DNA of 63,716 bases, the filler included, from Dimorphilus gyrociliatus (taxonomy: Eukaryota; Animalia; Annelida): assembly GCA_904063045.1 (NCBI GenBank). It is 3 parts of 3 records of this genome, joined end to end, with 100 filler letters (N's around TTAATTAATTAA, not from the genome) between each part and the next. Parts side by side here need not be neighbours in the genome. Positions count along the whole stretch, not along the records: positions 1 to 25,698 come from CAJFCJ010000158.1; 2 more parts are not named here. One strand, 5' to 3'. Made by a program: the position numbers and the translations under genes. The notes under the pieces were generated by a model. The model was given only the letters and a program-made list of their open reading frames with translations. It ran no database searches and was not told the DNA's origin. Shown here piece by piece: positions 1 to 24,246 of this stretch (the first letter of the stretch is position 1; every line of letters starts with the position of its first letter).

Positions 1-3000
1 AGAATCAATCGAATTTTTGGGTGCAATTTCAATTTAATTTAATTCAGTTCATTCAAGAACTTATTACCGTTGGTATTGATCTTCTTTTAAAGAAGCGATT
101 CGTTTTGGAAAGAATTGTTGATCTTTTACTAATGATGATCATAATGCCGCCATGTACCGATGTAGAATCGTTTATTCACGTTGCTGCTTTAATCGGGGTT
201 AAAATTAATACTGTTCTTATTCAAATTTGTTCTAAAGTTGTTGAGCAAATTGCTCGCGTTAAGTCCAACGAAGTTCCCAATTTGAAAGTTGAAGGAGAGC
301 TAATGACAAAAAAAATAGGCATTCAAAAACTATCGTCCAAGTTGCGTCATATTGTTGATATAGGCTCTCAGGTAGAAATTGACGAAGTTTGGTCGGTTAT
401 CATACCCGAGTTAGGTTTGTGGATGTTGGAGAACGCAGATGACTACATCAAAGAAGAATATTTTAGACTTTTCGAACAAGCTTTCATTAAAAGTTCATCG
501 TCTGGTGTACACCTAATAGCCGTCAAAGCCTTATCTCCTATTTATAATCTCATGGAGAAGAAGGGAGAATTGAGCACGAAAATGATTTCATTCAGTAAGA
601 GACTTTTAGGCTGTGTACTTCCGCATATGTGTGCAGAGGCCGACGATGAACAAGTGATTCATGCAACTCAAATTGTTAAAATTCTATATAACTTTTCCAA
701 AACGAACTATTGTCTTCCGCGGCCAGTGGACGCTAGTATTTTTGCGCCAAATTTAATTCGTTGCATAGATGTAGCGTATCCGACAGGAAAATTTCTCCTT
801 CTTAGATATTCAGCATTGGAAAAGCCTGAAAGAAAGGTAATGCAGTTTATCCGCCTCTATAACGAAGCCAACTTGGACAAGAACGAAGAGTCAATACGCT
901 ATTATGCCGATAGTTTGGCAATGATTGATGACATCTTTATGGATATGGGATTAATGATCGATATGCTTAGACACCAAAAGATAAGCAGCGAATTGCAGTT
1001 GACACTTGCTAAGTATACTTACGGACTGGCTGTTAATCTTTTAGGAACTACCCCGCTCCCCGGAAGAGATTTATCAATTAATAAGGGAAAAATTTCGCAG
1101 GCACTATCGCTATTACTGCTAAAGAATATAATGTCCCTTTTGAAAAAATTTCGCAAACGCTCAATCCAATTGCAATACATTGTAAAACTTGTACCTTTGA
1201 TTGAAAAGAAATATATAACGACGGAAGATGACAAAAGCTTTATTCTAGATATCCTTTACGAACTACTCGGAATTGGTTGTTGTCATCACGAGGAAAGTTT
1301 ATTGATCGCCGTATCAACAAGTCTAAAATTTCTAACTATTAACAACTATAGCGTTGGCCATATCTGTCTTCAGGCGACAAAAACCCGATTTAACGAAATA
1401 GTAAACGAAATGAATGAATCATTTAATAAATATTGGGAAGGTAGACTAAGAGGCGAAAAATTAAAAGATTTTGGGCGTAAATTGCGTAAAATATCATCAT
1501 TCTTTCATGAACACGAATTTCAAAAGTACAATAATCTTCTTGCCAACTTTGAAAGGGGTATCCGTATGATAAAGAATAAGAGTATGGACGAACTATTTGT
1601 TAAAGAATTCCTTAAGGCTGCAGCCTCTATGGCTCAAGCGTGTTCAATTCCATTTAACTGCCGGAATGAAACAACGACAGAATTCGAAAGCTATGAAAAG
1701 TTTCAATGCGACTTGATGGATATTTGCACCGACAGTTTCGGCGACTTAGACATTGATGAAGCTGCCTATGGCGTTGTCTGTCATATACTACTTGCGTACG
1801 ATTCAAAATTTAAACAAACCGGTTGCTATAAGGCTTTGTACGATGATGGTATCATTTCAGTACACAAGTCTGATTCATTTTTGTCCAAGATAAGTAAAAA
1901 GTTACAATGTTTTGTCCAATTTTATGTATTCTTCCAAAAGGATTTTCCAATGGAGAAAAAAATGATCTATTTAGAATCTTACGTCAGTCTTGTTATGAAA
2001 TGTCGCATACCTATGATCTTTTCTAGCTTTCTATTGTTGCACTGGGGAGAAAATGAGGAATTTAAGCCAATATTAAAAAAGTATTTCGATTGGGCCAGGC
2101 GCGTTAACCGTGTCGACCTGGCTAGAACCATAATTGAATGTCTCGCTCACGCCTATATGAAGAGTAAAAATAATCCGGAGAAATTGAAGCAGCTTTCCAC
2201 CGTTTTACTGTCCGAATTTGGACCAAACCTAGAAATTCATAGAGAAGCAGGCAGGGTTTTACAAAAAGTAGGAATTAAATTCGCATTAAAGGAAGAAATT
2301 CCTCCGTTTTTCGAAATTCTTACGGAGTGGACTTCCAAAATTTATAAAGATGATTCAGTTTTATTATTATGTTTTCTTGACGAGCAGGTATAATATTTCT
2401 TTGCTGACTTTTAATTAAGTCATTCTAACAGTAGATAATTGCTCATATTGTTTAATTTAAAACAGCTCGATAGTCTAGGCGATAAAAGTTTGTTTAACAA
2501 AGAGACATTTCCAATAGTAGAGAAGTATAAAAATACACTTTGGAATATACTTGATCCCAGTAAATATTATCCTTTTATTCTCCTATCATTCTTACAACAT
2601 CAATTTTCTCTTATTACTCTATTCTTGTTCGATATAGTTGAAAATATTAAAAGGGCCAACTTAGGTGATTTGTTTACGATGAATCGTAGTTGTGATAAAG
2701 TAATAATAAGATCGTAAGAATCTTGCATAATCTATTAAACAAAAAACTAACTATAATAAATTTTATTCTCTACAATCTAGGATTCAGGTAATAAATCGTA
2801 CTTGTTCAGGCGACCCTGACAAAGATAAACCGAAAACTTTGTATGTTCAGCCAATTATTTTTCGAAGCAGTGGTCAAATTGAATATAAAAAGTGTATGCG
2901 CCGGAGGCCGGTTATGAAGGCAGATGTTATGAATTAGTACGTTGTTCAATTTTTTGTTTTTCTGAAATAATTCATTTTAATTCGTATTAATCGGTGTAAA

Positions 3001-4626
3001 TTGTAGTCTTCCACCTCCAATACTGAAAAATCGGGAGACACAAAAGAAAAGAAAGCAGGAAAGTCAGGCTGAGGAAGCCTCGGTAGATTTTGCTATTGTA
3101 GACTTGAGTCATATAAACTCCCTATGTGAGGATAGCGGTAGCAATAGTAGTGAATCTTCATCGACGGAAAGTAAGTTATTTCAAACGTTTACACTTTTTT
3201 ATCAATCTGAAATTCAAACGCAGACAAAGATTTATCTCCAACAGCTGAAGAGTATATGAAAATCGTTAAAACATGCTCAGAATTGTCAACTGTGGATACT
3301 GCAACTTTACCAGATCCTCCAAAGTCCGCCTTTGCTCTTGCATCATTTTCGCCGATGTTATCGTCATCGTCTCCTACAGTGCCAGGTATGAAAATTATAT
3401 TTCCAGCGAACGGCCTACCATTCTCTTCCGCCAAATTCGCCTTACCATCAAGTGTTCAATCTGGATTCCGATCAATTACATCAAGATCTACAAAGACGAA
3501 AGTCTTATCGTCAGACTCTGTTAAATCTGCACAATCGGCATCTAAGTACATGAAACTGTCATCGACGAAGACGACTACAAAGCCGAAATCTACAATTTCC
3601 AAATCCTCAAGGGCTAAATCAGTTTCTTCAAAATCTGCGAAATCTAAACTTAAAGCTGAGCCAGTTACGCCTCCAACCCACGCATCTACATCTTCGACAT
3701 CCAATTCTACGGCATGGTTGCCTGCAAAGCCCAAATCGATATCATTAATAACTACAAAGTCGCCGTCACTCGATTCGTCAACTCTGTCAAGAGAGAATAA
3801 ACACGAGAGGCCTGGTCCGACCAGAATTAATTTTGCGGAATCAACATCTACCAATCCCAAACCCCCAACGACCACCTATTCGACGTCAACCTCTTCGACA
3901 TCCACCAGAATCACGTTTGGATCCAATTCTATATTAAACTCCTCTTCACCACCGATAGAAGCATTTGTACCTCTACTCGAAGCTGTTTCTGGAAATAATC
4001 AAGATGATTCTAATACTTTCAGTAAGTAGCTTACTAATTTAAAATAAAAAAAAAAATAATATTGTTCAAGCACAAGCAGATAGTGGACAAACAACATTTG
4101 AAATTATAGACGGCTCTATGCTGGACAATGGTAATATAGAATAAAAATATAAAATTGAATTTTCTCTTTCCGCGTATTTTTATTTTTCATAATTTGAACA
4201 GATAAAATTGAAGATATGGAAATCAACAACTGTCAACAGTGTCCTATTGAATGTGATTTGAATTCAAGCGTGCCAAGTCATGGTCTCGAAGAAGAGTTGG
4301 GATTGACAAACGAACAGTTAGGATTAACAATTGGGGGTGATAATACCCTCTTGGACGCTATCAAGGGTAAAATACCGCTACAACAGCAAAGAATGTTGGA
4401 GATAATAAAAAAGAACTTTATTTTGCAGAGGTAACGGATCAAGATATTACTGATGAATCTTTAGGATGGGATAGCATCGTAAGTTCTTATGTTAATTAAA
4501 AAAGATTTATCTAAAATTGCAGAATCCATCTTTACAGCCATTGTCCTCAAATGATATTATTACTGATATTATTACTGATGATGACGCGCTTACGTCTAGC
4601 TTTAATTTTGGAGTAAGTAAACATTA
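1..4626 (+). CDS. Divergent cohesin SA/STAG (stromalin)-like subunit, 5'-partial, multi-exon, with long Ser/Thr/Lys-rich C-terminal tail
   Basis: The ORF is open from the window edge to a donor at ~2387. PELGLWMLENADDYIKEEYFRLFEQAF..VHLIAVKALSPIY matches the STAG SCD motif (EEIGVWM..Y.DAFLNDSYLKYVGW..VRLKCLKALQSLY). SEFGPNLEIHREAGRVLQKVGIKFAL..PPFFEILTEWTSKI matches the STAG C-terminal motif (TFGLDQIKTREAV..LHKDGIEFAF..FLEVLSEFSSKL). Downstream exons (~2465-2551, 2639-2712, 2781-2936, 3007-3172, 3225-4022, 4202-4366, 4428-4477, 4522-4626) join in frame through GT-AG introns of ~50-180 nt. Confidence 0.8.
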
Positions 4627-8385: not shown

Positions 8386-8467
8386 GCAGTCGTGGCCGAG
8401 TGGTTAAGGCGATAGACTAGAAATCTATTGGGCTCTGCCCGCACAGGTTCGAATCCTGTCGACTGCG
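8386..8467 (+). tRNA. tRNA-Ser (anticodon AGA)
   Basis: 82-nt cloverleaf GCAGTCG...CGACTGCG with long variable arm, anticodon loop CT-AGA-AA, T-loop GGTTCGAATCC and a downstream T-run. Confidence 0.97.
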
Positions 8468-11131
8468 CAAAATATTCTCTTTTTTGTTTTTTTAAAAGTT
8501 TTGTCTTTTAATTAAAAAAGAAACGTGTTAAACTCTTTCTATTGCAGTTGCAGATGATGTTGATTTAGAAAAGAAAGCAAAAAGGGGCGGAGAGAGCGGA
8601 AGGGGAAACAGAAATTGTTTATCATCATCTAAGTAAAAGTTAGTTACAATATGACTTTTTCGAAGACTGGGCGAGAGATAAAACCAATCTGCAAGTGGTG
8701 ATAAGGTAATCAAAAATATTGCTGTTGTTTTTGCAGTATACTAGTAAATTTTGTTTTTTTTTTTTATTACATCTAAAGATAACTTGGATTCGTGAGAATG
8801 TTTGTTTGAATATTTTCCTCTTCAATTCAGTTTGTCTTTCTAGATGAAAGAAATATCATTTTATTGTTGAAAATAAAATTTTCGGTTTTGAACAATCCGA
8901 AAAAGGATGGAAAGATGATGAATACTAATTCTGCTTTGATGAGAAAACTTCAGTATCCGAACCAATTAACTCGTTGTCAATCTCTTCAATATTAATAGGA
9001 TTATTGGATGATTCCGATATGGAAGTGGATAATAACCAATATGGAATTAATAGCGGTATGGGAAGCTTATACGCTCAATTTCGGAATTGATAATAATTAA
9101 TATAAACCATAATAACTTTACTATAGCCTGTATTGGCCCTATAAAGAATAGGTAGCAGTTGTCCCATTCAATAGACATTCTTTTCTATTCGGTTTGCAGA
9201 CGTATTCCGGTCGGGCGGCCAACGTTTTAAATTTAGCTTTGAAAATTTTTTTCATGATGATTTTTACTCTTTTTTTACATTTTTTAGTTGTCGCGATGCG
9301 AATGATACTCTGCAAAGGAAGCTGATTGAAAAATGACGAATTTCGGTTCCAAAAGTATATTGGTGAGACAGCTTATAAAGCGGAAGAAGGTTTCGTCTGC
9401 TTTTCGATAGGTCAAAGGTAGTAGAGTTTTTCCTATCTATCTAGCTATCTAGCTATCTTTTTATTTTTCTTGTTGAAACCCTATTTGGCTATAGTATTTA
9501 TAGAACAAGTTGGATATCCTATTCAATGTTGTCCGGTTGCTCAAATTATACTCGGAGCTATCGTTCAAGACTTAAACGATAATTACCAATTGAAAAGAGA
9601 TTATTGAAACAAAAAACTTCAAAAGTAATTTTTTATTAAATTCTTCTTCCTTTCTATAAGAATCTTAAGTTAATGATATTTTTGTTTTTTCTTTTTCTTC
9701 TTTCATAAAGAAACCTTGCAGTGGATCTATTAAATAAATGCCATTCAGAGAATCCTCAAAATACCCAACTGCTTGCTACTCGTTAAAGACATTGATCCGA
9801 CGACGATAGAGGACATTTCAAATTGAATATTCCTTATTTTATTCTAGGTTTTGCTATCTATATTATTTATCTTCCTACTCTTCTTCTCAATGTTAAGTTT
9901 AACTGGCGAAACAACGAAGGCGGGCGATCTATCAGTAGCCGAGCCGATTGGCTTTTCGTTGATTGGCTTATTACAATAGTTCCACATTTCTACAATAAAA
10001 AATCTATTCTTAAAAGAAAACTTATTAAATTTCTGGCACACGACTGCAATTTATTGGATTCTATTTGCCTAGTTATGTTTAAAACTGCAATTTTGTTGGC
10101 TGCTGATTGTTGGCGATGCATGAAACTATCTCGAGTTATTTTCTCAATTTTTCTATTCATTTGTTATAGTAGACTTTTTAAATATGTTCATATCGTCTCT
10201 AAGCGAAAGAGGACCAAAATTGATCATCATCATCAAAGAGATGACGTTAAGATTATTGTGGTTTTTTATAATCCTATCAGTTGTTGTTGTTGTCATTGGT
10301 TACGGTGTCGCTATCCAATCTATTCCCTATCGAAAAATCACAGCTATATTATTAATGTTTAATTTGATTGTTGCAGTATTCGAGTAAGAAGTGAATGATA
10401 TTGTTCTTTTCTTTGTTATTCTAATTGACAATTCTTTAAACCATAGACAAACTTAGGGTAGTTTGTTATCTATATTGTATGATTAGTAATAAAATCAAGT
10501 TTTCTCTCTCTCTCTCTCACTCCAAATGGGAAATGCTAATGATTGAAAAGTTTTTCACCAATCAGCGCACAAAGCGTTCAGATTGCATTACCTTATTACC
10601 TACTTAAAGAAACATATTATTCACTGAGAACAATCATTCAACACTCTCAATAATAACATTCGAACAAACTTGATTATTAATTAATTAATTAATACTATTC
10701 TACTTGTTTGTTTACATTGTTGTGTCGTCTGGTTTATTGCTATTGTAAATATCTACGAAATAAATAAATAACATTAAAAAGTTTTTAATATTCTTTTTAA
10801 GCATAACAACTAAAAAAAAACACCAATTCTATCGAAATAAAAGTAAAATATGCTATTTATGAAAAGTACGAAAAAATTATTGATTAATTTTTTTTTACCA
10901 CGTGCATTTTTTGTTCTAAAAAAAGTCACGTGACGTTCTAAAAAAATTCTTGCACGCCTGTCAATTATTGTTCATTAGGCTCTTCAAAAAAAAAATGGCG
11001 ACATCTTATTGAACGCTGATAGATTTTTTGTTGAAAAAAAGCACTTTAAAGTTATTTTGCAATATTATTTTTGAAGAAAAGTAATAATATTTAAAGACTA
11101 TAATAGCAAACAGAAGAAAAACTTTGGAAAA

Positions 11132-12313: not shown

Positions 12314-12395
12314 GCAGTCGTGGCCGAGTGGTTAAGGCGATGGACTCGAAATCCATTGGGCTCTGCCCGCACAGGTTCGAATCCTGTCGACTGCG
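12314..12395 (+). tRNA. tRNA-Ser (anticodon CGA)
   Basis: 82-nt cloverleaf, anticodon loop CT-CGA-AA, followed by a long poly-T terminator. Confidence 0.97.
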
Positions 12396-12549
12396 AAATT
12401 TAATATTTTTTTTTTTTTTTGGCTTTTTTGTTTTAATATTTATTTTTTTTTTTGCGAATAGAACGTTCTTGAGTAGTATCTCAATTGTCTATATAAACGG
12501 GGAGAGTTGTGCCGTCTAAATACCGTAGGGATTGAACAAGAAAATCGGT

Positions 12550-15500
12550 ATGAAGACAAAGAACAATAGAATAGTGTTCAAAAATGCCGAAGAATGCTTG
12601 GAAGATTTCAAAGGTTGCCACGGGTATAGACGCTGGACGACGCTTGGACGAGTAATTGGCCATAAACAATATTCTAATGATATTTACCTGAAAATCGAAA
12701 CGATAAATGGTGTAAATAACAGTTGCTGTTATTTGGCGATTCTTTTTTTGACCCCAACGACTTTTAGGGTTCGTTTCGACCCAAAAGCTTGTGATTACGA
12801 TAAGTTTCCAAGCACAACTAGTCGTAGTGTTGTTAAATACCCTTTAATAGACGTTTCGAAGCCAAGGTCAAAACCTACATTCAAGTACACCGATAAAGAA
12901 CCAATCAACTTGGATAGAACACAGATAGGGAGAATAGTAAATATCGAGGTAATTGATGACAATCGAAATGACTATATAACAATTCTGGTTAAGGATAGAA
13001 TAGAGGAGAAAATTCGTATGAAAGTGAAAATTTTCAAAGAAAAATACAGATTGGAAGTTTATCAACGAACGAAAAATGGAGCATTTAGATTGGTTCATTC
13101 GGACGCTAATACGAGTATTTATTATAAAGAAACGGCCAATTATAAGGTGAACGGAGAGGCGATAGTTGAATATACAGTAATACAGGCTAAAAGAATGCAT
13201 AAGGATGCAAAATATATTGGATTACGAGAAAAGATTACAGTTGACGGAGGGAAACAAACAGGGTACAATTTCGAGAATATAGACTACAAGAAGATCAACT
13301 CTTCTAGGGGAAGTAGTAAGGATTGTAATGGTGGAGACATATCGTACGAAACGAATGGATTTTTTATGGAGAAGAGGATCGACTACGAGAATGTTATCCA
13401 AGGAATATTGGTGGATAATACATGTCAAACCATATTCGATATGGACATTTACAACGGAGTTGGCCAATATATATTTGGTTCGGTATACGGTTGTTTAGAC
13501 TATTATTATTTTCTTGGTGAGAATATCAAGCAGGTTTTAGAGATTTTCAACAGTTTCATTGGTAAAAGTTCACTGAAACCCAGATATATTTTTGGTAATC
13601 ATCAGGGTTGTTATGGCTATAGAAATTTGTACGATTTACACGACGTCGTAAGCGGTTATAGGGGTAATGGTATACCTCTCGACGGCCTACACATTGACGT
13701 TGATCTGCAAAAGAATTATTGCACGTTTACCATGAACGAAGACTTGTTTCCTTCCGATACGTTCAAACAATTGGCCGCCAGAGGTATTAAATGTGCAACA
13801 AACGTTACACCGGCAATTTCCTATACGAACTCCTCTTATAAGACGTTCGAAAGCGGTAAGAAGAATAAAGTTTTCGTAACGGCTAGACAGGTTAACGATC
13901 AATCGTCGAATCGTAATCCGACCGATCCCTTCTACAAAGGTGGCGTCTACTACGGTGGTAAAAGGGGAGCGTTTAGTTATTATCCGAATTTCGGCGATAA
14001 AGACGTCAGATATTGGTGGGGAGCCCAATATAGGATGCTTATGTACAGGGGTCTAGAGATGATCTGCCAAGATATGACAACACCCCGTATTGCCGATCCG
14101 AAGGAGAATAATAGTGTTGAAATTTACCATAATAAAGCTGATAAATGGTACAAATTATCGGATAAGATTCAATCCGATAATCGATCGTTTCCCCTTAATC
14201 AATTGCTAACTGACAATTCTCAACGAAATATTACTAATCCAATTGATAATATGAATTGTAAAACGAAAGAATTAATGATAATCAAATCTCCATTTGCAAA
14301 AATCACCAATCTCTACTCGTATAATATGCATAAGGCAACCTATCACGGTCTCAATTGTATATGGTTAATTAATCCGTTTGTCTTTACGGGTGTCGGTGAA
14401 AAGGGTATCACCAAAGAGGACGCTCTAGAGATTATCGAAGACCTTAAAGCTTGCAATTGTCTAATTGATATTGAACGGGAAAAGAACGTCTACAACGTCG
14501 ACTATTTTAAGGGGAGAAAATTGAAATTACGGCCCAAGTATAAAAAGTACGAAGAGGAAGTAAGAAAAATCTTGGAGGAGACGGTCATTCTGAGGCGTCT
14601 AAGGAGAAATAAACGTAATTTTATACTGGGACAAAGCGAATTTAACGGCACTCGTCGTTTCAGCTGTTCTTTGTCGGATCGAAACGTTTCCGAATGGAAT
14701 TGTTTGCAGACGGTTATATGCCAAGTTCTTGGCCAAGGTCTAGCGGGTCAAAGTATTTCGGGACAGGACATTGGAGGCTACGGCGACGCTGAAAGTAAAT
14801 CAGAAGAATGGATCGATCCAGAGTTATTTATCAGATGGATTTGCGCCGGTTGCCTACTACCCTGGTTCAAAAATAACTATACACGCTATGGTAATAAACT
14901 TTTCCAAGAACCCTACAAGTTCAAAGACTGCGTCGATAGAGTGGACGAAAATAAAAGGCAACTCTACATGACCGTCGTACCAATTTGTCGGTATTATGTT
15001 CAATTACGATATCGTCTAATGCAGATTTTCTACGATCATATGTTCGAGAATCATATAGGTGGATTGCCAATAGTTAAGCCTCTCTTCATTACCGACGAGA
15101 ACGATACAACTCTATTCAAAGATCATTCGAAATTCGTCAACGACGAGTTTATACTCGGTAACGATATTCTTGTCGCTCCCGTTCTGCATAGGGAGGCGGA
15201 TTGTTCGAAGAAGGGAAGAAGGGACGTCTACCTACCAAGCGGAAACGATTGGTACGCGTTCAAGAATAATTGTTGGCCTCTTAACGAACCTGTCGAGGGT
15301 GGATCGGTTATAGATTACGACGCCGCAATTAATAACGATCCGGATCATATTCCTTTCATCTTGCCGATATACGTACGAGACGGAGCGATTATACCGACAA
15401 TCGAATTGGAGCAGTACGTCGGCCAACTGAAAAACGAAGGGAAACCCAATCCGATTACGTTAAACATCTATCCGGGAAGGGATAGAAGCTATTGTATGTA

Positions 15501-15999
15501 TAACGACGACGGCGAAAGTCGATCGTCCGCTCCCAAAGGCTACGTTAAATACGGAACGGATCCGGAGGCTAGAAGCGAATATAGAAAGACTTGTATATCC
15601 CATTCGTTCAAGGACGCCAAATGCAGAATTGTCGAAATTAAATGGTTGCATAACAATTATATTCCGTTCGAGAGTTACTTTTACGTTGCCATACTGGACG
15701 ATCCGAAACGAGAGGAGGATCCTTTGCATAGTATTCGTATTAAATCGAAAAATTTCAATTATCCAATTAACGAAACTGTCTCAAAGATTATTCGCGCCGA
15801 CCCAGTGGACGCCGCAAAAACATTGGAGATAAGTCCAACAAACGCCTGGTACTACAACAGAAACGTTGGAATATCTTTTATTAAAATATTCTACGATAAG
15901 GAACTACAAAATACAACGCCTATTAAGGAGGACGAAACTCATCGCGATTCTTCCCCAGCCTCTTCACCAACCTATCAACTGCTCATTAAATATAAGTAG
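12550..15999 (+). CDS. GH31 family protein, alpha-1,4-glucan-lyase-like, intronless, no signal peptide (first ATG 12550; frame open from 12532)
   Basis: ~1150-aa ORF with LKPRYIFGNHQGCYGY, IPLDGLHIDVDLQ, GIKCATNVTPAIS, QDMTTP, YSYNMHKATYHGLN, NKRNFILG, SGQDIGGY, EFILGNDILVAPV, VYLPSGNDWY and IPTIELEQYVG. These resemble the lyase subgroup of GH31 rather than animal lysosomal or ER glucosidases (WxDMNE). Confidence 0.9.
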   Translation: MKTKNNRIVFKNAEECLEDFKGCHGYRRWTTLGRVIGHKQYSNDIYLKIETINGVNNSCCYLAILFLTPTTFRVRFDPKACDYDKFPSTTSRSVVKYPLIDVSKPRSKPTFKYTDKEPINLDRTQIGRIVNIEVIDDNRNDYITILVKDRIEEKIRMKVKIFKEKYRLEVYQRTKNGAFRLVHSDANTSIYYKETANYKVNGEAIVEYTVIQAKRMHKDAKYIGLREKITVDGGKQTGYNFENIDYKKINSSRGSSKDCNGGDISYETNGFFMEKRIDYENVIQGILVDNTCQTIFDMDIYNGVGQYIFGSVYGCLDYYYFLGENIKQVLEIFNSFIGKSSLKPRYIFGNHQGCYGYRNLYDLHDVVSGYRGNGIPLDGLHIDVDLQKNYCTFTMNEDLFPSDTFKQLAARGIKCATNVTPAISYTNSSYKTFESGKKNKVFVTARQVNDQSSNRNPTDPFYKGGVYYGGKRGAFSYYPNFGDKDVRYWWGAQYRMLMYRGLEMICQDMTTPRIADPKENNSVEIYHNKADKWYKLSDKIQSDNRSFPLNQLLTDNSQRNITNPIDNMNCKTKELMIIKSPFAKITNLYSYNMHKATYHGLNCIWLINPFVFTGVGEKGITKEDALEIIEDLKACNCLIDIEREKNVYNVDYFKGRKLKLRPKYKKYEEEVRKILEETVILRRLRRNKRNFILGQSEFNGTRRFSCSLSDRNVSEWNCLQTVICQVLGQGLAGQSISGQDIGGYGDAESKSEEWIDPELFIRWICAGCLLPWFKNNYTRYGNKLFQEPYKFKDCVDRVDENKRQLYMTVVPICRYYVQLRYRLMQIFYDHMFENHIGGLPIVKPLFITDENDTTLFKDHSKFVNDEFILGNDILVAPVLHREADCSKKGRRDVYLPSGNDWYAFKNNCWPLNEPVEGGSVIDYDAAINNDPDHIPFILPIYVRDGAIIPTIELEQYVGQLKNEGKPNPITLNIYPGRDRSYCMYNDDGESRSSAPKGYVKYGTDPEARSEYRKTCISHSFKDAKCRIVEIKWLHNNYIPFESYFYVAILDDPKREEDPLHSIRIKSKNFNYPINETVSKIIRADPVDAAKTLEISPTNAWYYNRNVGISFIKIFYDKELQNTTPIKEDETHRDSSPASSPTYQLLIKYK

Positions 16000-16234
16000 C
16001 ATAACAATTTTTATTCTCTTTTAAAACGAAACAAGGACAACAACCACCATTGTCGTGTCAAGCTTATCTAACAAAATTATAATAATACAATTCTTTCATC
16101 TTAAAAAAAAAGATCACATTACGGTAAATTGACGGGTTCTTCCATAAACTTTACTAGAAATTCAAGCGTTACTCCTTCAAGATACTACTTGAATATTAGC
16201 AAAAAAAATTTTTATGAGTAAAAAATAGACGCTT

Positions 16235-16316
16235 CGCAGTCGACAGGATTCGAACCTGTGCGGGCAGAGCCCAATGGATTTCGAGTCCATCGCCTTAACC
16301 ACTCGGCCACGACTGC
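16235..16316 (-). tRNA. tRNA-Ser (anticodon CGA)
   Basis: Reverse complement is identical to the 12314-12395 gene; T6 run downstream on the minus strand. Confidence 0.97.
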
Positions 16317-16843
16317 TACGGGGTAATTAACGTTTATTTTCAGAATAGATTCACGCTAATTAATTAATTTTAACCAACTTTAACTTGTAATTTACTCTAT
16401 CGAATACGACTATTGCAAGGCAAAGGAAGGAAAGAAGGAGAATGAGAGAAGAGGAACGAAGGAGATAGAAGTATTTTTAAAAGAGATATATTTGTCTATT
16501 GTCTTTCTTCGAAAAACATAAAGAAGAAGAAGGAGAAGGAGAAGAAGAAGAAGAAGAAGAAGAACGAAGAGTATTTACAATTTTTGAACGATTATTGTTA
16601 TTTAGCGTTTACGGAATTGAATAAATAGACAGAAGATGTCGCCACTGTTATATTTTTGTAAAAGATAATCGGAAATTGATCGAAAATAATGAAAGATAAG
16701 ATAAAAGAGATATATAAACTTTAATCAATAACTATTATGAATAATAAACAAACAGATAGATAATAAAATCTATACGTTCTTCAGTTAAGCTAGATAATAA
16801 TCGGTCTATTTGAATCGATATAAATAGCCTATATACTAACTGT

Positions 16844-16925
16844 GCAGTCGTGGCCGAGTGGTTAAGGCGATAGACTAGAAATCTATTGGGCTCTGCCCGC
16901 ACAGGTTCGAATCCTGTCGACTGCG
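16844..16925 (+). tRNA. tRNA-Ser (anticodon AGA)
   Basis: Identical to 8386-8467; followed by a T-run. Confidence 0.97.
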
Positions 16926-17290
16926 TAATTTTTTTTTTCTCAATTCAGAAATATTGCTTCCTCATTCTGTATTGATAATGATAATTGAGAGAGAGAGAGA
17001 GAGAGAGAGTATCATATTCCTCCTTCTGCTACACCTACAGGCTAAAAAACAAGAGTCTAGATTTAGAGAAAGTCTCTTAGACGACAGAGTTAAAAGATTA
17101 ACTAAAATGAGGATAAATGAGAGAAATGATAAACTGTTTTCATTTTATCATAAAGATATTCAAAACAACTTGTTCCCAGTAGACCTGCTTAATTGGCTAT
17201 TGAAAATTAACTGGGTATATTGTTTTTCGGTACAAACAAGTTGGCGGTCCTTTGCATAGTATTCGTATTAAAGAGACGAAGCGTTATAGA

Positions 17291-18689
17291 ATGAAGACTG
17301 CTACTCTTCCGCTAATAATCCTTATCTTCCTAACGAGTATAAACCATTCTAGGTTTGCGTTTCATTGATACTACTCATCTATTGTTCATATTCAAATATA
17401 GATTCAACAATCGTCGATGGAGGATTAAGATTCTTTCCGGAAAATGTCTTTTCTCAAAGATTATTCTCGGTGCAAACTTATTCGGGCGGAAGCTTTATTA
17501 ACGTTTTCGATCATCCATTGAGTCGTATCACCGCCAACGGATTGCTAGTTCAATGGATTTTCCTTCGAGAGAATACGTACAACTGCTCAATGGGTTTGTT
17601 TTGTTTGTTTGTTTGTTTGTTTGTAATTTCTTTACATACATCCTGTAGATATTTGGAGGAAAACTGAGAATGAAAGATACAAACTAGTTAGCTCTAGCGT
17701 TGTTCCAAAAGTTCCTGTCAAGGTTGTATCTTCGTTGAAGCAAGAACGTTTCGTTAGAGTGGAAAATGGCGACCTATTGGGCATTCACGCTATCGACATT
17801 CGTAGAGATAAGCATTGTATATCGTTCGTTAAGGACTCGGCATACGTTCATTCCTATCCGACCGGTAGGAGGGTAGGAAGATTGGCGAACGTCAACGTTG
17901 GGACGACGGTCCAAATGACAAACCTAGGTGCGCTGAGACTCTACAATATGCAGGCGGTAGTCGTCGAGGGTAATCTTTTACGAATAGGTACTAACTTATT
18001 GTCAGTGTTTGTTTGTTTGTCCCTCCGTCCCTCCCTATAAGCCTATTTTTATAGTTTCAGTGAATAGTTCCAACAAACTAGATGGCGTTGTTGTAGGGCG
18101 ACGATGGTACAATTTAAAGAGGGGCGAATACTCCAAGTACTTTACGATTGAATTGGAGAGTTTAAGTAATCTTCAAGAGGTTGTTATTCTCGCCTACGAA
18201 AAGATTAATCAGGTCAACGTCTTTGTTGGAGATAGTCCTATCAGACAGCTTGGTTGGACAATTTGCCACCAAACAATTGGCGGACGCATGTCCATGGAAG
18301 AGTCAATAAAACTTTATCATCTCTCTTTAAAATGTCGGGATAATCATCTTAGCGGAAAGTTTGTCATTGTTGAATCGGCCTATTTGTTTACATTTTCCAC
18401 TATTTTCGCCATCGGACAAACGGTTGACGCGCTACAATTTGCCCTCTTACCATTCCCGTTCGTACTTCCGGTAGAAGGGAATGGGAGATATCAATACAAA
18501 TGTCCATCGTTAATGAAATGTGCAAGAATATGTAAATTAGATGGAAAATGTAGGGGAATAACCATAATCAATGATAGGGAATTTTATACATCTTCTAGGC
18601 CTATTGCGGTTAACCAGACAAAATTTTCCATGAAAAGTCTATATAAGAGATCTGAGCTAAGAGATTTAATTACAAATCATTGCCTATAG
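17291..18689 (+). CDS. Secreted protein with an unnamed N-terminal beta-rich domain and a C-terminal PAN/apple-like domain (4 exons)
   Basis: Signal peptide MKTATLPLIILIFLT. Exons join in phase: ..DIWRKTENERYKLVSS..VRVENGDLLGIH.. then VSVNSSNK... The C-terminus has CPSLMKCARICKLDGKCRGITI (PAN C-x3-C-x5-C core). Confidence 0.6.
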
Positions 18690-18956: not shown

Positions 18957-19664
18957 ATGGATAAGATAATCTTGATGTTAATAGTTTGTTTTAATGGATT
19001 AACAAGTACTCTTGCGGAAAAGTCAATCTATAATGAGATTAATGGATTAAAGATTCAAGAAAATGGAAAAGCTTGCGTTGAATTATATATTCCTTGTAGA
19101 AAGAACGAAAAGAAAGCTCATGGAAGCGATTGTCAAGCTTATTTCGTATGCGGTCAACCTCTTCAACAAACTGACGAAGAAGGAACCGCCTGGGAAGTTC
19201 ACTATTGTCCTGAAGATCAAATATACGACCTGAAGATAAATAATTGCCAATACAGTCATTTATCCAAATGTAATATTGAAGATAGAGAATTCTGTGCGAA
19301 ATCTCGACTGATTCTATTCGATGACAAACAGAATCAAAGTAACTTTTATAAACCGGAACAAGTAAGAGATATCTACAAAGAGAAAACAGACTCTTCTCCT
19401 TCCGATATGACAAGCAAACAGATAGTCGTTCCTTCCGTAATCGGTGGTCTTTTGATCATAGTTGCAGTAATCTGTGGTATTATCTTCTACCGACGTTATC
19501 GAGCACATAAGAAAGCTGAGAGCAGATCAAGAAGACCTAGTCACAATAGCGACCTTCAAAATCCTTCTGGTCAGTTGTTCTTCTTGAATGATCGGCCACA
19601 TTGGCAACCTACTCGTTTTCAACAAGACAAATGGCAAAACGACGATAGGATCGAAAGATACTGA
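18957..19664 (+). CDS. Type I membrane protein with a chitin-binding peritrophin-A (CBM14)-like domain, intronless
   Basis: Signal peptide; 6-Cys pattern C..AHGSDCQAYFVC...HYCPEDQIYDLKINNC..C; transmembrane segment IVVPSVIGGLLIIVAVICGIIFY followed by RRYR. Confidence 0.75.
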   Translation: MDKIILMLIVCFNGLTSTLAEKSIYNEINGLKIQENGKACVELYIPCRKNEKKAHGSDCQAYFVCGQPLQQTDEEGTAWEVHYCPEDQIYDLKINNCQYSHLSKCNIEDREFCAKSRLILFDDKQNQSNFYKPEQVRDIYKEKTDSSPSDMTSKQIVVPSVIGGLLIIVAVICGIIFYRRYRAHKKAESRSRRPSHNSDLQNPSGQLFFLNDRPHWQPTRFQQDKWQNDDRIERY

Positions 19665-23343: not shown

Positions 23344-24246
23344 CTAATCTGGTACAACATCATTAGCATTCCTTCTACAAAGACTAGTTGATATCTTTCT
23401 AATTGGACTATAAATAATAAAAGTCATAGTTGGATTTGTAAAAGCAATCAACAATATAATAAATTCGCCGTATTTCAGTAATCTATAGGAACGATTCGAG
23501 ATATCTGATAGCATATTAGATAATATACTAAGGTAGATTATCCACAGGATTATCCTTATAAATAGCTTCACTAATGTCAATTTGGACGATTTTGATGTAG
23601 TTTTAACCTTTTTCATCTGCATTTGCATATTGTCAACGTGACTTTTTGCTATTTTTAAAATTGCTATATGAAAGTATAAACAAGAAACAATTGTCGGCAC
23701 AAAAGCAATAACGCAATATATATATATATAATACAGTTTAAACGCTATTAATCCTCCGCAAAATAATATTTCGCCTGAACTAGATACGGCCAAATAAACT
23801 GGTATAAATGAAAATATTGCCGAAAACGTTGTAATGATTATTGAGATCAATAGTGATACTTTTAAATTGCAGTAGTTTGGATAAATGAATGGGAATGATA
23901 TAAATATATATCTATTGCAGAAGACTGCAATAAGATAGTATTGATTTTGTATAAATATAAAAATTGGTACAACTACTTGTAGAACGCAGAGTAAAGGAGT
24001 TGAACGAATCTTGGCGTATTCTTGTAAAATGTTGATTAAATACATCCAAATCACTAATAATAGATCGGTTATTGTCATTGCCATAACGAAAAATCCACAT
24101 TTCTCTCGAATATGTTTATATCTTGCGAATATTAATGTAATCATAGAATTAAAGCTTAAACAGAGTAGCGATATTAGATGAATCGATGTTCTTATCACAT
24201 TCAATTCGATTGAACCAACGTCTATTGATGACGTCATGTTTTCCAT
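23344..24246 (-). CDS. Orphan rhodopsin-family GPCR, intronless, 300 aa
   Basis: Seven hydrophobic segments; TM1 N, TM2 MTITDLL, TM3 Cys and NRY(IFI), TM5 FVP, TM7 FTNPTMTFIIY. Confidence 0.8.
   Translation of the reverse strand: MENMTSSIDVGSIELNVIRTSIHLISLLCLSFNSMITLIFARYKHIREKCGFFVMAMTITDLLLVIWMYLINILQEYAKIRSTPLLCVLQVVVPIFIFIQNQYYLIAVFCNRYIFISFPFIYPNYCNLKVSLLISIIITTFSAIFSFIPVYLAVSSSGEILFCGGLIAFKLYYIYIYCVIAFVPTIVSCLYFHIAILKIAKSHVDNMQMQMKKVKTTSKSSKLTLVKLFIRIILWIIYLSILSNMLSDISNRSYRLLKYGEFIILLIAFTNPTMTFIIYSPIRKISTSLCRRNANDVVPD

Follow-up and report, generated by a model that had tools for sequence, protein, structure and literature searches.

What is a glycoside hydrolase family 31 (GH31) gene related to alpha-1,4-glucan lyases doing on a contig with genes of animal type, how did it get there, and does its product still catalyze the reaction for which the lyases are named? 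The question is raised by the first piece (25.7 kb; positions 1 to 25,698, from CAJFCJ010000158.1) of a 63,716-nucleotide stretch from assembly GCA_904063045.1, listed under Dimorphilus gyrociliatus; this whole stretch is called the window, and positions are counted along it. A sequence-only reading had proposed that an intronless gene of this piece was acquired by horizontal transfer, resembles the lyases of fungi, red algae and cyanobacteria, and encodes an enzyme making 1,5-anhydrofructose from starch or glycogen. The analysis described here supports the transfer, places the ancestry of the gene among bacteria, and finds the general acid and several other conserved residues of the active site substituted. 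We consider it probable, if far from certain, that this is a domesticated bacterial GH31 gene whose active site has been re-wired or is no longer catalytic, and not a standard anhydrofructose-forming lyase. The gene and the element preceding it are as follows.

12550..15999, plus strand: intronless lyase-like GH31 gene, 1149 codons plus stop (ORF list, translation, Pfam, best Protein Data Bank (PDB) match 2x2h)
12490..12497, plus strand: candidate TATA-box-like element, TATATAAA, 53 nt upstream of the ATG; a putative promoter, judged from its sequence and from where contigs X2 (12513) and X6 (12541) begin, with a transcription start predicted near 12513–12541

A single unbroken open reading frame (ORF) spans positions 12532..15999 on the plus strand, with an in-frame stop upstream at 12526 and a first ATG at 12550, and yields a product of 1149 aa. 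The uninterrupted 3.45-kb gene of the sequence-only reading was thus recovered, with all six of its quoted motifs: NHQGCYGY (aa 350–357, nt 13597–13620), LDGLHIDVD (aa 377–385), GIKCATNVTP (aa 412–421), QDMTTP (aa 507–512, nt 14068–14085), HKATYHGLN (aa 594–602) and NKRNFI (aa 687–692). Pfam matches to the GH31 TIM barrel (PF01055, 1e-54) and the GH31 C-terminal domain (PF21365, 3e-15) put the family assignment far beyond chance. The protein begins with MKTKNNRIVFKNAEECLEDF, and this hydrophilic N-terminus lines up flush with those of bacterial homologues, with no extension, which argues that neither a signal peptide nor a transit peptide is present, as had been said of the former, and a protein without a signal peptide would be expected to reside in the cytosol.

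Within GH31, the top PDB match by phmmer was the Gracilariopsis alpha-1,4-glucan lyase 2x2h (3e-41, 144 bits vs at most 120 bits for glucosidases), and a Foldseek comparison using an AlphaFold model (14-row alignment, mean predicted local distance difference test score, pLDDT, of 65) again ranked 2x2h first (E 2e-33), all of the top 50 matches being GH31 proteins. Since 2x2h is the best match by both sequence and fold, the gene is to be placed in the lyase-like branch of GH31 and not among the WiDMNE glucosidases of animals, as originally proposed, and the GH31 fold is retained in the predicted structure. Similarity to the Gracilariopsis lemaneiformis enzyme (EC 4.2.2.13) includes size (about 1050–1150 aa for both), a QDMT(V/T)P nucleophile motif instead of WiDMNE, and conservation of HQG.(Y/F)G and IP(L/F)(D/E)GL..DVD, although local identity is just ~17–30%. 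The two differ in their acid catalyst, which is the Asp of ‘WVGDN’ in 2x2h and an Arg in the window protein, in the RNH motif, which has become KNN, and in their position within the family, the window gene lying outside the algal and fungal lineage, in a bacterial subclade with two extra insertions. A more specific NCBIfam assignment was also attempted, and returned glucosidase and xylosidase equivalogs only, all of them below threshold.

The nearest relatives of this protein are bacterial. Top matches in a word-index search were all bacterial or metagenomic, with 45–48% identity over the full length, and an exhaustive HMMER search among 1.84 billion cluster representatives returned 5430 relatives, the closest having 49% identity. 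No annotated animal or other eukaryotic orthologue was found in these word-index and HMMER protein collections, so that the orthologues widespread across Metazoa, named by the sequence-only reading as the outcome that would speak against transfer, were not encountered; a scan of Joint Genome Institute (JGI) metagenome contigs likewise turned up no close relative. The nearest named relatives are Vibrio penaeicida (WP_224055496.1) and metagenome-assembled genomes (MAGs) of Polyangiaceae, Candidatus Polarisedimenticolaceae, Marinilabiliaceae, Bacteroidota and Cytophagaceae. Eukaryotic members of the family include the fungi Calocera, Fusarium venenatum, Cirrosporium and Ceratobasidium, and one streptophyte alga (P0153). 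In a maximum-likelihood (ML) tree of 34 rows and 997 columns (LG+C20 PMSF), with no red-algal sequence among the rows, the window gene grouped with Vibrio penaeicida and Polyangiaceae (support 100/98) inside an eight-row, all-bacterial clade (100/99), a placement reproduced by a quick tree of 63 rows. The broad lyase-like clade (100/99) thus contains the gene within its bacterial sister subclade, apart from the fungi. Indeed, an approximately unbiased (AU) test rejected a tree in which window gene and fungi were forced together (difference in log-likelihood 157, p 1.4e-72; the group was chosen after inspection of the tree, which affects the strength of the p-value in a formal sense only), and two insertions (alignment columns ~655–680 and 745–830) are common solely to the window protein and the nearest bacterial clade. 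The transfer itself is hence supported by the phylogeny, while the suggested kinship with fungal or red-algal lyases is not: on these sequence relationships the ancestry of the gene is bacterial, and neither fungal nor algal nor vertical.

Comparison with the nearest bacterial homologues (those of Vibrio penaeicida, Polyangiaceae, Marinilabiliaceae, Bacteroidota and Polarisedimenticolaceae, 45–49% identical over the full length) reveals the same domain order, both clade insertions, a similar C-terminal tail (…P.Y.L…YK) and the absence of a signal peptide. Yet the terminal branch leading to the window gene measures 1.03 in the ML tree, as compared to 0.44 and 0.60 for the sister lineages, and while the bacterial homologues keep every catalytic residue, the window protein does not. 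Two further features of the family emerged from the same material. Four fungal lyase-like proteins (P0128, P0129, P0132, P0135) form one clade nested in the cyanobacterial-type bacterial subclade, and the fungal lyases may themselves derive from a separate, older bacterial transfer, to judge from this nesting. Full-length lyase-like GH31 proteins are also encoded in Methanosarcina and Methanosarcinaceae MAGs (L037, L042; 46–47% best-segment identity), indicating that the family reaches the archaea.

The extent of active-site change was assessed against 115 full-length members, in which 148 columns are near-invariant (at least 114 of the 115 agree), and in a wider check against nine more distant members, four fungal proteins among them, for a total of 124. 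The window protein deviates at 25 of the 148 columns, as opposed to a maximum of four in any one of the 115 relatives (in a comparison over columns with at most two deviants), whereas 90 columns stay fully invariant, including that of the nucleophile. The residues and motifs concerned, all read from alignment, are listed here in order along the protein.

13219..13233, plus strand: loop of the N-terminal domain with GLREK for the invariant GFGEKGG (F225L, G226R and loss of two Gly)
W506C, adjoining the nucleophile motif (ICQDMTTP), aligned over 124 members
14071..14073, plus strand: codon of Asp508 in QDMTTP, the catalytic nucleophile, kept; aligns to ‘VWQDMTVP’ of 2x2h and is invariant in 115/115
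R695Q and G696S, between NKRNFI and the acid motif
14668..14685, plus strand: SLSDRN (aa 707–712) in place of the family LWTGDN, in an ungapped alignment between invariant anchors
W708L, within the SLSDRN motif, aligned over 124 members
14680-14682, plus strand: Arg711, at the position of the general-acid Asp (D711R), preceded by Asp710 in place of an invariant Gly (G710D)
F744Y, DIGGFE having become DIGGYG
14863..14880, plus strand: WFKNNY in place of the invariant WFRNHY (R774K, H776N), aligned over 124 members

Central to this list is the loss of the Asp of the W.GDN motif, the established general acid/base of GH31 enzymes. This residue is present in all 115 bacterial-type members and in all nine fungal or other members, the window protein alone having Arg, and because no gap separates R703/F704 from N712/S714/W716, Arg711 falls exactly on the Asp of ‘WVGDN’ in 2x2h. 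Five substitutions (D711R, W506C, W708L, R774K and H776N) are unique to the window protein against all 124 members; some of the nine distant members are equally deviant overall, and all nine keep W506, W708, G710, D711, R774 and H776. Retained in the window protein are Asp508, the HIDVD motif, R703 and D740. Residue roles were assigned by alignment to 2x2h and from general knowledge of GH31. Of the catalytic motifs reported by the sequence-only reading the nucleophile motif QDMTTP is therefore intact, whereas the second motif, WTGDN, which was overlooked, reads LSDRN, and with the general acid and at least four other residues invariant in 124 members substituted, the proposed production of 1,5-anhydrofructose appears doubtful. 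The odd motifs do not stem from faulty assembly, as they recur unchanged in the independent contigs X2 and X5 described below, and no alternative frame restores the canonical motifs, as a compensated frameshift would have it; their codons are also unchanged in an RNA-library contig covering 14635–14827. Low-confidence stretches of the structural model coincide with the deviant motifs, and given the 14 rows on which the model was built they were accorded no weight.

The setting of the gene on the supplied contig is eukaryotic, and the surrounding features of the 25.7-kb piece are these.

12314..12395, plus strand: tRNA-Ser(CGA) of eukaryote type (ARAGORN; Rfam, 66 bits), 154 nt upstream of the GH31 ATG
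16235..16316, minus strand: tRNA-Ser(CGA) (ARAGORN, Rfam), 235 nt downstream of the GH31 stop
16843..16926, plus strand: tRNA-Ser(AGA) (ARAGORN, Rfam, repeat analysis)
8386-8468: fourth tRNA-Ser copy, AGA (ARAGORN, Rfam, repeat analysis)
~17292..18689, plus strand: spliced neighbour gene for a secreted protein, with short GT-AG introns (ORF pieces, GT...AG boundaries), 1.3 kb downstream
17234..17272, plus strand: direct repeat D4, a 39-nt copy of GH31 coding nt 15706–15744 (85%, last 25 nt exact)
18957-19664: type-I membrane protein with a CBM14 peritrophin-A domain (Pfam)
23344-24246, minus strand: intronless rhodopsin-type G-protein-coupled receptor (GPCR; 7tm_1, Pfam)
3-2393, plus strand: cohesin SA/STAG-like ORF, intron-free, at least 797 codons, cut by the piece edge (Pfam HEAT_SCC3-SA, 6e-10; Atlas features)
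3256-4029, plus strand: mucin-like Ser/Thr-rich ORF of 257 aa, putatively coding, with no Pfam family

Residence among tRNA and spliced genes on one contig, put forward by the sequence-only reading, agrees with the four tRNA-Ser genes flanking the gene and with the GT-AG spliced neighbour. The two tRNA-Ser(CGA) copies constitute an 86-nt inverted repeat (I2), 100% complementary, that exactly brackets the GH31 gene. None of the tRNA-Ser genes encodes CCA, and a T-run follows both plus-strand copies inspected; tRNA genes that do not encode CCA and are followed by a T-run are the arrangement of eukaryotic RNA polymerase III (Pol III) transcription. Each tRNA-Ser sits in a ~110–120-nt repeat unit that includes a T-rich trailer, the cluster comprising two AGA and two CGA copies. 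The immediate flanks of the GH31 gene have 28% GC. In relative synonymous codon usage (RSCU) the gene correlates with the pooled neighbouring host genes at r 0.59, within the range of the host genes among themselves (0.53–0.74), as opposed to −0.40 to 0.17 against six bacterial homologues; the gene has taken on host codon usage. No other bacterial-looking ORF was seen on the 25.7-kb piece. Three gene families (7tm_1 GPCR, CBM14 and cohesin SA) and Atlas look-alikes of the GPCR and the SA-like ORF, which come without exception from eukaryotes and nearly always from animals (Porifera, Arthropoda, Rotifera, Cnidaria, Chordata), make it likely that the genome is of animal type.

Some of these neighbours merit brief comment. 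The 39-nt copy of the GH31 gene (encoding ..DPLHSIRIK..) lies 1.5 kb downstream and ~20 nt 5′ of the start codon of the spliced neighbour, and may have been left behind by a second copy since decayed or by a repair patch; a search of the 25.7-kb piece for a second GH31 copy or pseudogene yielded just this fragment, the only tblastn match being eight residues long (PLHSIRIK). For the spliced neighbour no Pfam family was found when its ORF pieces were scanned singly, with exons unjoined. The cohesin SA/STAG-like ORF is too divergent for word searches, which found no relative of it, and may be a fast-evolving paralogue or a retrocopy; no match to the GPCR protein came from such searches either. 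The stretch holding the mucin-like ORF is locally richer in GC (42%) and has a long ORF on its opposite strand.

Independent sequence data bear on both the reality of the gene and its maintenance. Using the 3.8-kb stretch between the tRNA genes as query, a search of read runs found it in four runs that belong to one study and carry one organism label, and in a fifth run from another study under a second label. Contigs X2 (12513–16125) and X5 (12726–16049) are identical to the window. X2 starts 23 nt past the start of the TATA-like element, and X2 and X5 stop 126 and 50 nt, respectively, after the stop codon; in view of such transcript-like ends the runs behind them, guessed to be ‘DNA?’, may really be transcriptomes. 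In addition, a metatranscriptomic RNA library from a coral sample contains contigs (X6) covering 12541–13133 and 14635–15547 in which 26 of 1488 positions, or 1.7%, depart from the window sequence (98.3% identical), indicating that a slightly diverged lineage carries the same gene. Of 20 listed differences 11 are synonymous and nine non-synonymous, giving a ratio of non-synonymous to synonymous change (pN/pS) of ~0.21 (binomial p 7e-4); across these 20 differences the GH31 gene is under purifying selection. Judging from the RNA-library contigs the gene is presumably transcribed. A further run with the same species label (X7) yielded nothing, which is no proof of absence.

Gene order around the bacterial relatives speaks to the chemistry of the subclade from which the gene came. 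In Vibrio penaeicida the GH31 gene is directly followed by a gene with the beta-propeller domain of aldos-2-ulose dehydratase (AUDH; PF22301, 2e-39), and a HAD hydrolase gene precedes the pair. An AUDH-like homologue occurs within 6 kb of GH31 in at least 20 of 73 bacterial loci and in both subclades, the organisms including Vibrio, Polarisedimenticolaceae, Marinilabiliaceae, Clostridiales, several cyanobacteria, Electrothrix and Paenibacillus. Examples, by locus and position, are:

L005:9385-10899, AUDH-like gene (PF22301)
L009:6489-7757, AUDH-like gene (PF22301)
L007:9576-10757, AUDH-like gene (PF22301)
L018:9488-10750, AUDH-like gene (PF22301)
16 further loci with AUDH-like genes (PF22301)

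AUDH converts 1,5-anhydrofructose in fungi (cf. PMC12441222). Its adjacency in bacteria therefore supports the view that the bacterial enzymes are true lyases of an anhydrofructose pathway, and the conserved pairing suggests an anhydrofructose operon. Unlike its bacterial homologues, which adjoin such a gene, the window gene is on its own, with eukaryotic tRNA genes on either side, and a search of the 25.7-kb piece for an AUDH partner found none.

Several points weigh against a domesticated gene of altered chemistry and have to be set beside the evidence above. X2 and X5 end in unique sequence, the independent short-read contigs leaving gaps of 116 and 108 nt to the tRNA genes, and since these contigs do not bridge to the tRNA or host genes, linkage rests on the supplied contig. 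The selection test draws on 20 differences from low-depth contigs, presence in an RNA library is not strict proof of transcription, and the term ‘lyase’ for the bacterial subclade itself follows from fold match and synteny. Finally, activity might survive intact with Asp710, beside Arg711, serving as a displaced acid, and the model, at a pLDDT of 65, is too poor to judge whether Asp710 reaches the acid position. The first of these points would suit bacterial contamination or a chimeric assembly join, by which the gene would belong to an associated bacterium, as would its intronless structure and bacterial nearest relatives, a marine Vibrio being the nearest with a name. We nonetheless hold this to be highly improbable, as it would require two joins exactly framing a single gene, in non-coding flanks of low GC with eukaryote-type tRNA genes and no other bacterial ORF on the piece, and a bacterium whose codon usage fits the host genes and no bacterial homologue, whose sequence exceeds 49% identity to nothing bacterial among the 1.84 billion representatives, and which turns up in two studies under two organism labels. 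Vertical descent of an ancient eukaryotic gene lost in nearly all other animals deserves equally little credence: it could appeal to the lyase-like GH31 proteins of fungi, red algae (2x2h) and the streptophyte alga, and is opposed by the fully supported nesting in a bacterial subclade apart from the fungal clade, by the AU test, which rejects eukaryote monophyly, by the missing introns, and by protein searches that found no animal homologue.

The many substitutions at invariant catalytic positions, the long branch and the orphan 39-nt fragment downstream could also be taken as signs of a decaying pseudogene that is open by chance. This is very unlikely in light of a 1149-codon frame, ~48% identical to its nearest kin, that could not have stayed open under neutrality, the low pN/pS, the fully invariant columns with the nucleophile among them, and the presence of the sequence in an RNA library. 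The same purifying selection and RNA-library presence show that the protein matters, and so fit an alpha-1,4-glucan lyase that came from bacteria and is fully active, by which the host would degrade glycogen or starch to 1,5-anhydrofructose. Consistent with such an enzyme are the lyase-like branch and the structural match to 2x2h, the conserved QDMTTP, HIDVD, R703 and D740, and an Asp next to the lost acid. Nevertheless an active lyase of the standard kind seems unlikely, given an Arg where 124 of 124 relatives, fungi included, have the general-acid Asp, the replacement of W506, W708, R774 and H776, a branch of about double the length seen in the sister lineages, and the lack of an AUDH-type partner gene on the 25.7-kb piece.

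The explanation favoured here, that of a domesticated bacterial gene with a changed active site, would run as follows. A GH31 gene of the lyase-like branch would have moved from a bacterium, probably a marine one, into the nuclear genome of an AT-rich eukaryote with animal-type genes, landing inside a tRNA-Ser cluster, with a TATA-like element upstream and, as far as the 25.7-kb piece goes, its AUDH partner left behind. After transfer it would have adopted host codon usage and been kept under purifying selection, to be present today in an RNA library, the event being old enough for full codon adaptation and 50% protein divergence. Along the long branch Asp508 would have been kept, with Gly-Asp becoming Asp-Arg at the acid, W506C, W708L, R774K and H776N arising, and the GFGEKGG loop changing. 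The protein would keep its fold and probably still binds an alpha-glucan or glucoside. Its chemistry may have been lost, leaving a glucan-binding pseudo-enzyme, or altered, either with Asp710 as a relocated acid or with a substrate that needs no acid, Arg711 for example holding its good or anionic leaving group.

Transfer of glycoside hydrolase (GH) genes from bacteria to invertebrates is known in itself, examples being GH32 in invertebrates (PMC11311677), GH genes acquired by herbivorous arthropods (PMC4943190) and lepidopteran GH31 (PMC3606386). The present case shares with them an intronless gene for a carbohydrate-active enzyme (CAZyme), of bacterial ancestry, located beside host genes, host-adapted and, here presumably, expressed. 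It differs in that the acquired invertebrate enzymes are described as functional hydrolases, whereas the window protein is devoid of the canonical acid catalyst. New are the occurrence of a lyase-branch GH31 gene in an animal-like genome and the Asp-to-Arg change at the acid; searches of the literature on glucan lyase yielded no lyase-branch GH31 in an animal. To our knowledge, red algae and fungi are the sole described sources of lyase-like GH31 to date, apart from uncharacterised bacterial genes.

A copy under selection in an animal-like genome would bear on a long-standing question, namely whether a third, lytic route leads from glycogen to 1,5-anhydrofructose in animals, and the recurrence of the conserved GH31-AUDH pair in many bacterial phyla hints at an anhydrofructose pathway in bacteria that has yet to be characterised. 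The lost catalytic acid offers a natural experiment on how a host makes use of an acquired enzyme, the fold being kept and the chemistry changed. Tentatively, the gene may represent a marine animal's re-engineered bacterial glucan lyase, which, if true, would make it the first GH31 of the lyase branch known from an animal, and one that would either act by an undescribed chemistry or on an undescribed substrate, such as an anionic or activated glucoside, or serve, catalytically dead, as a glycogen-binding regulator.

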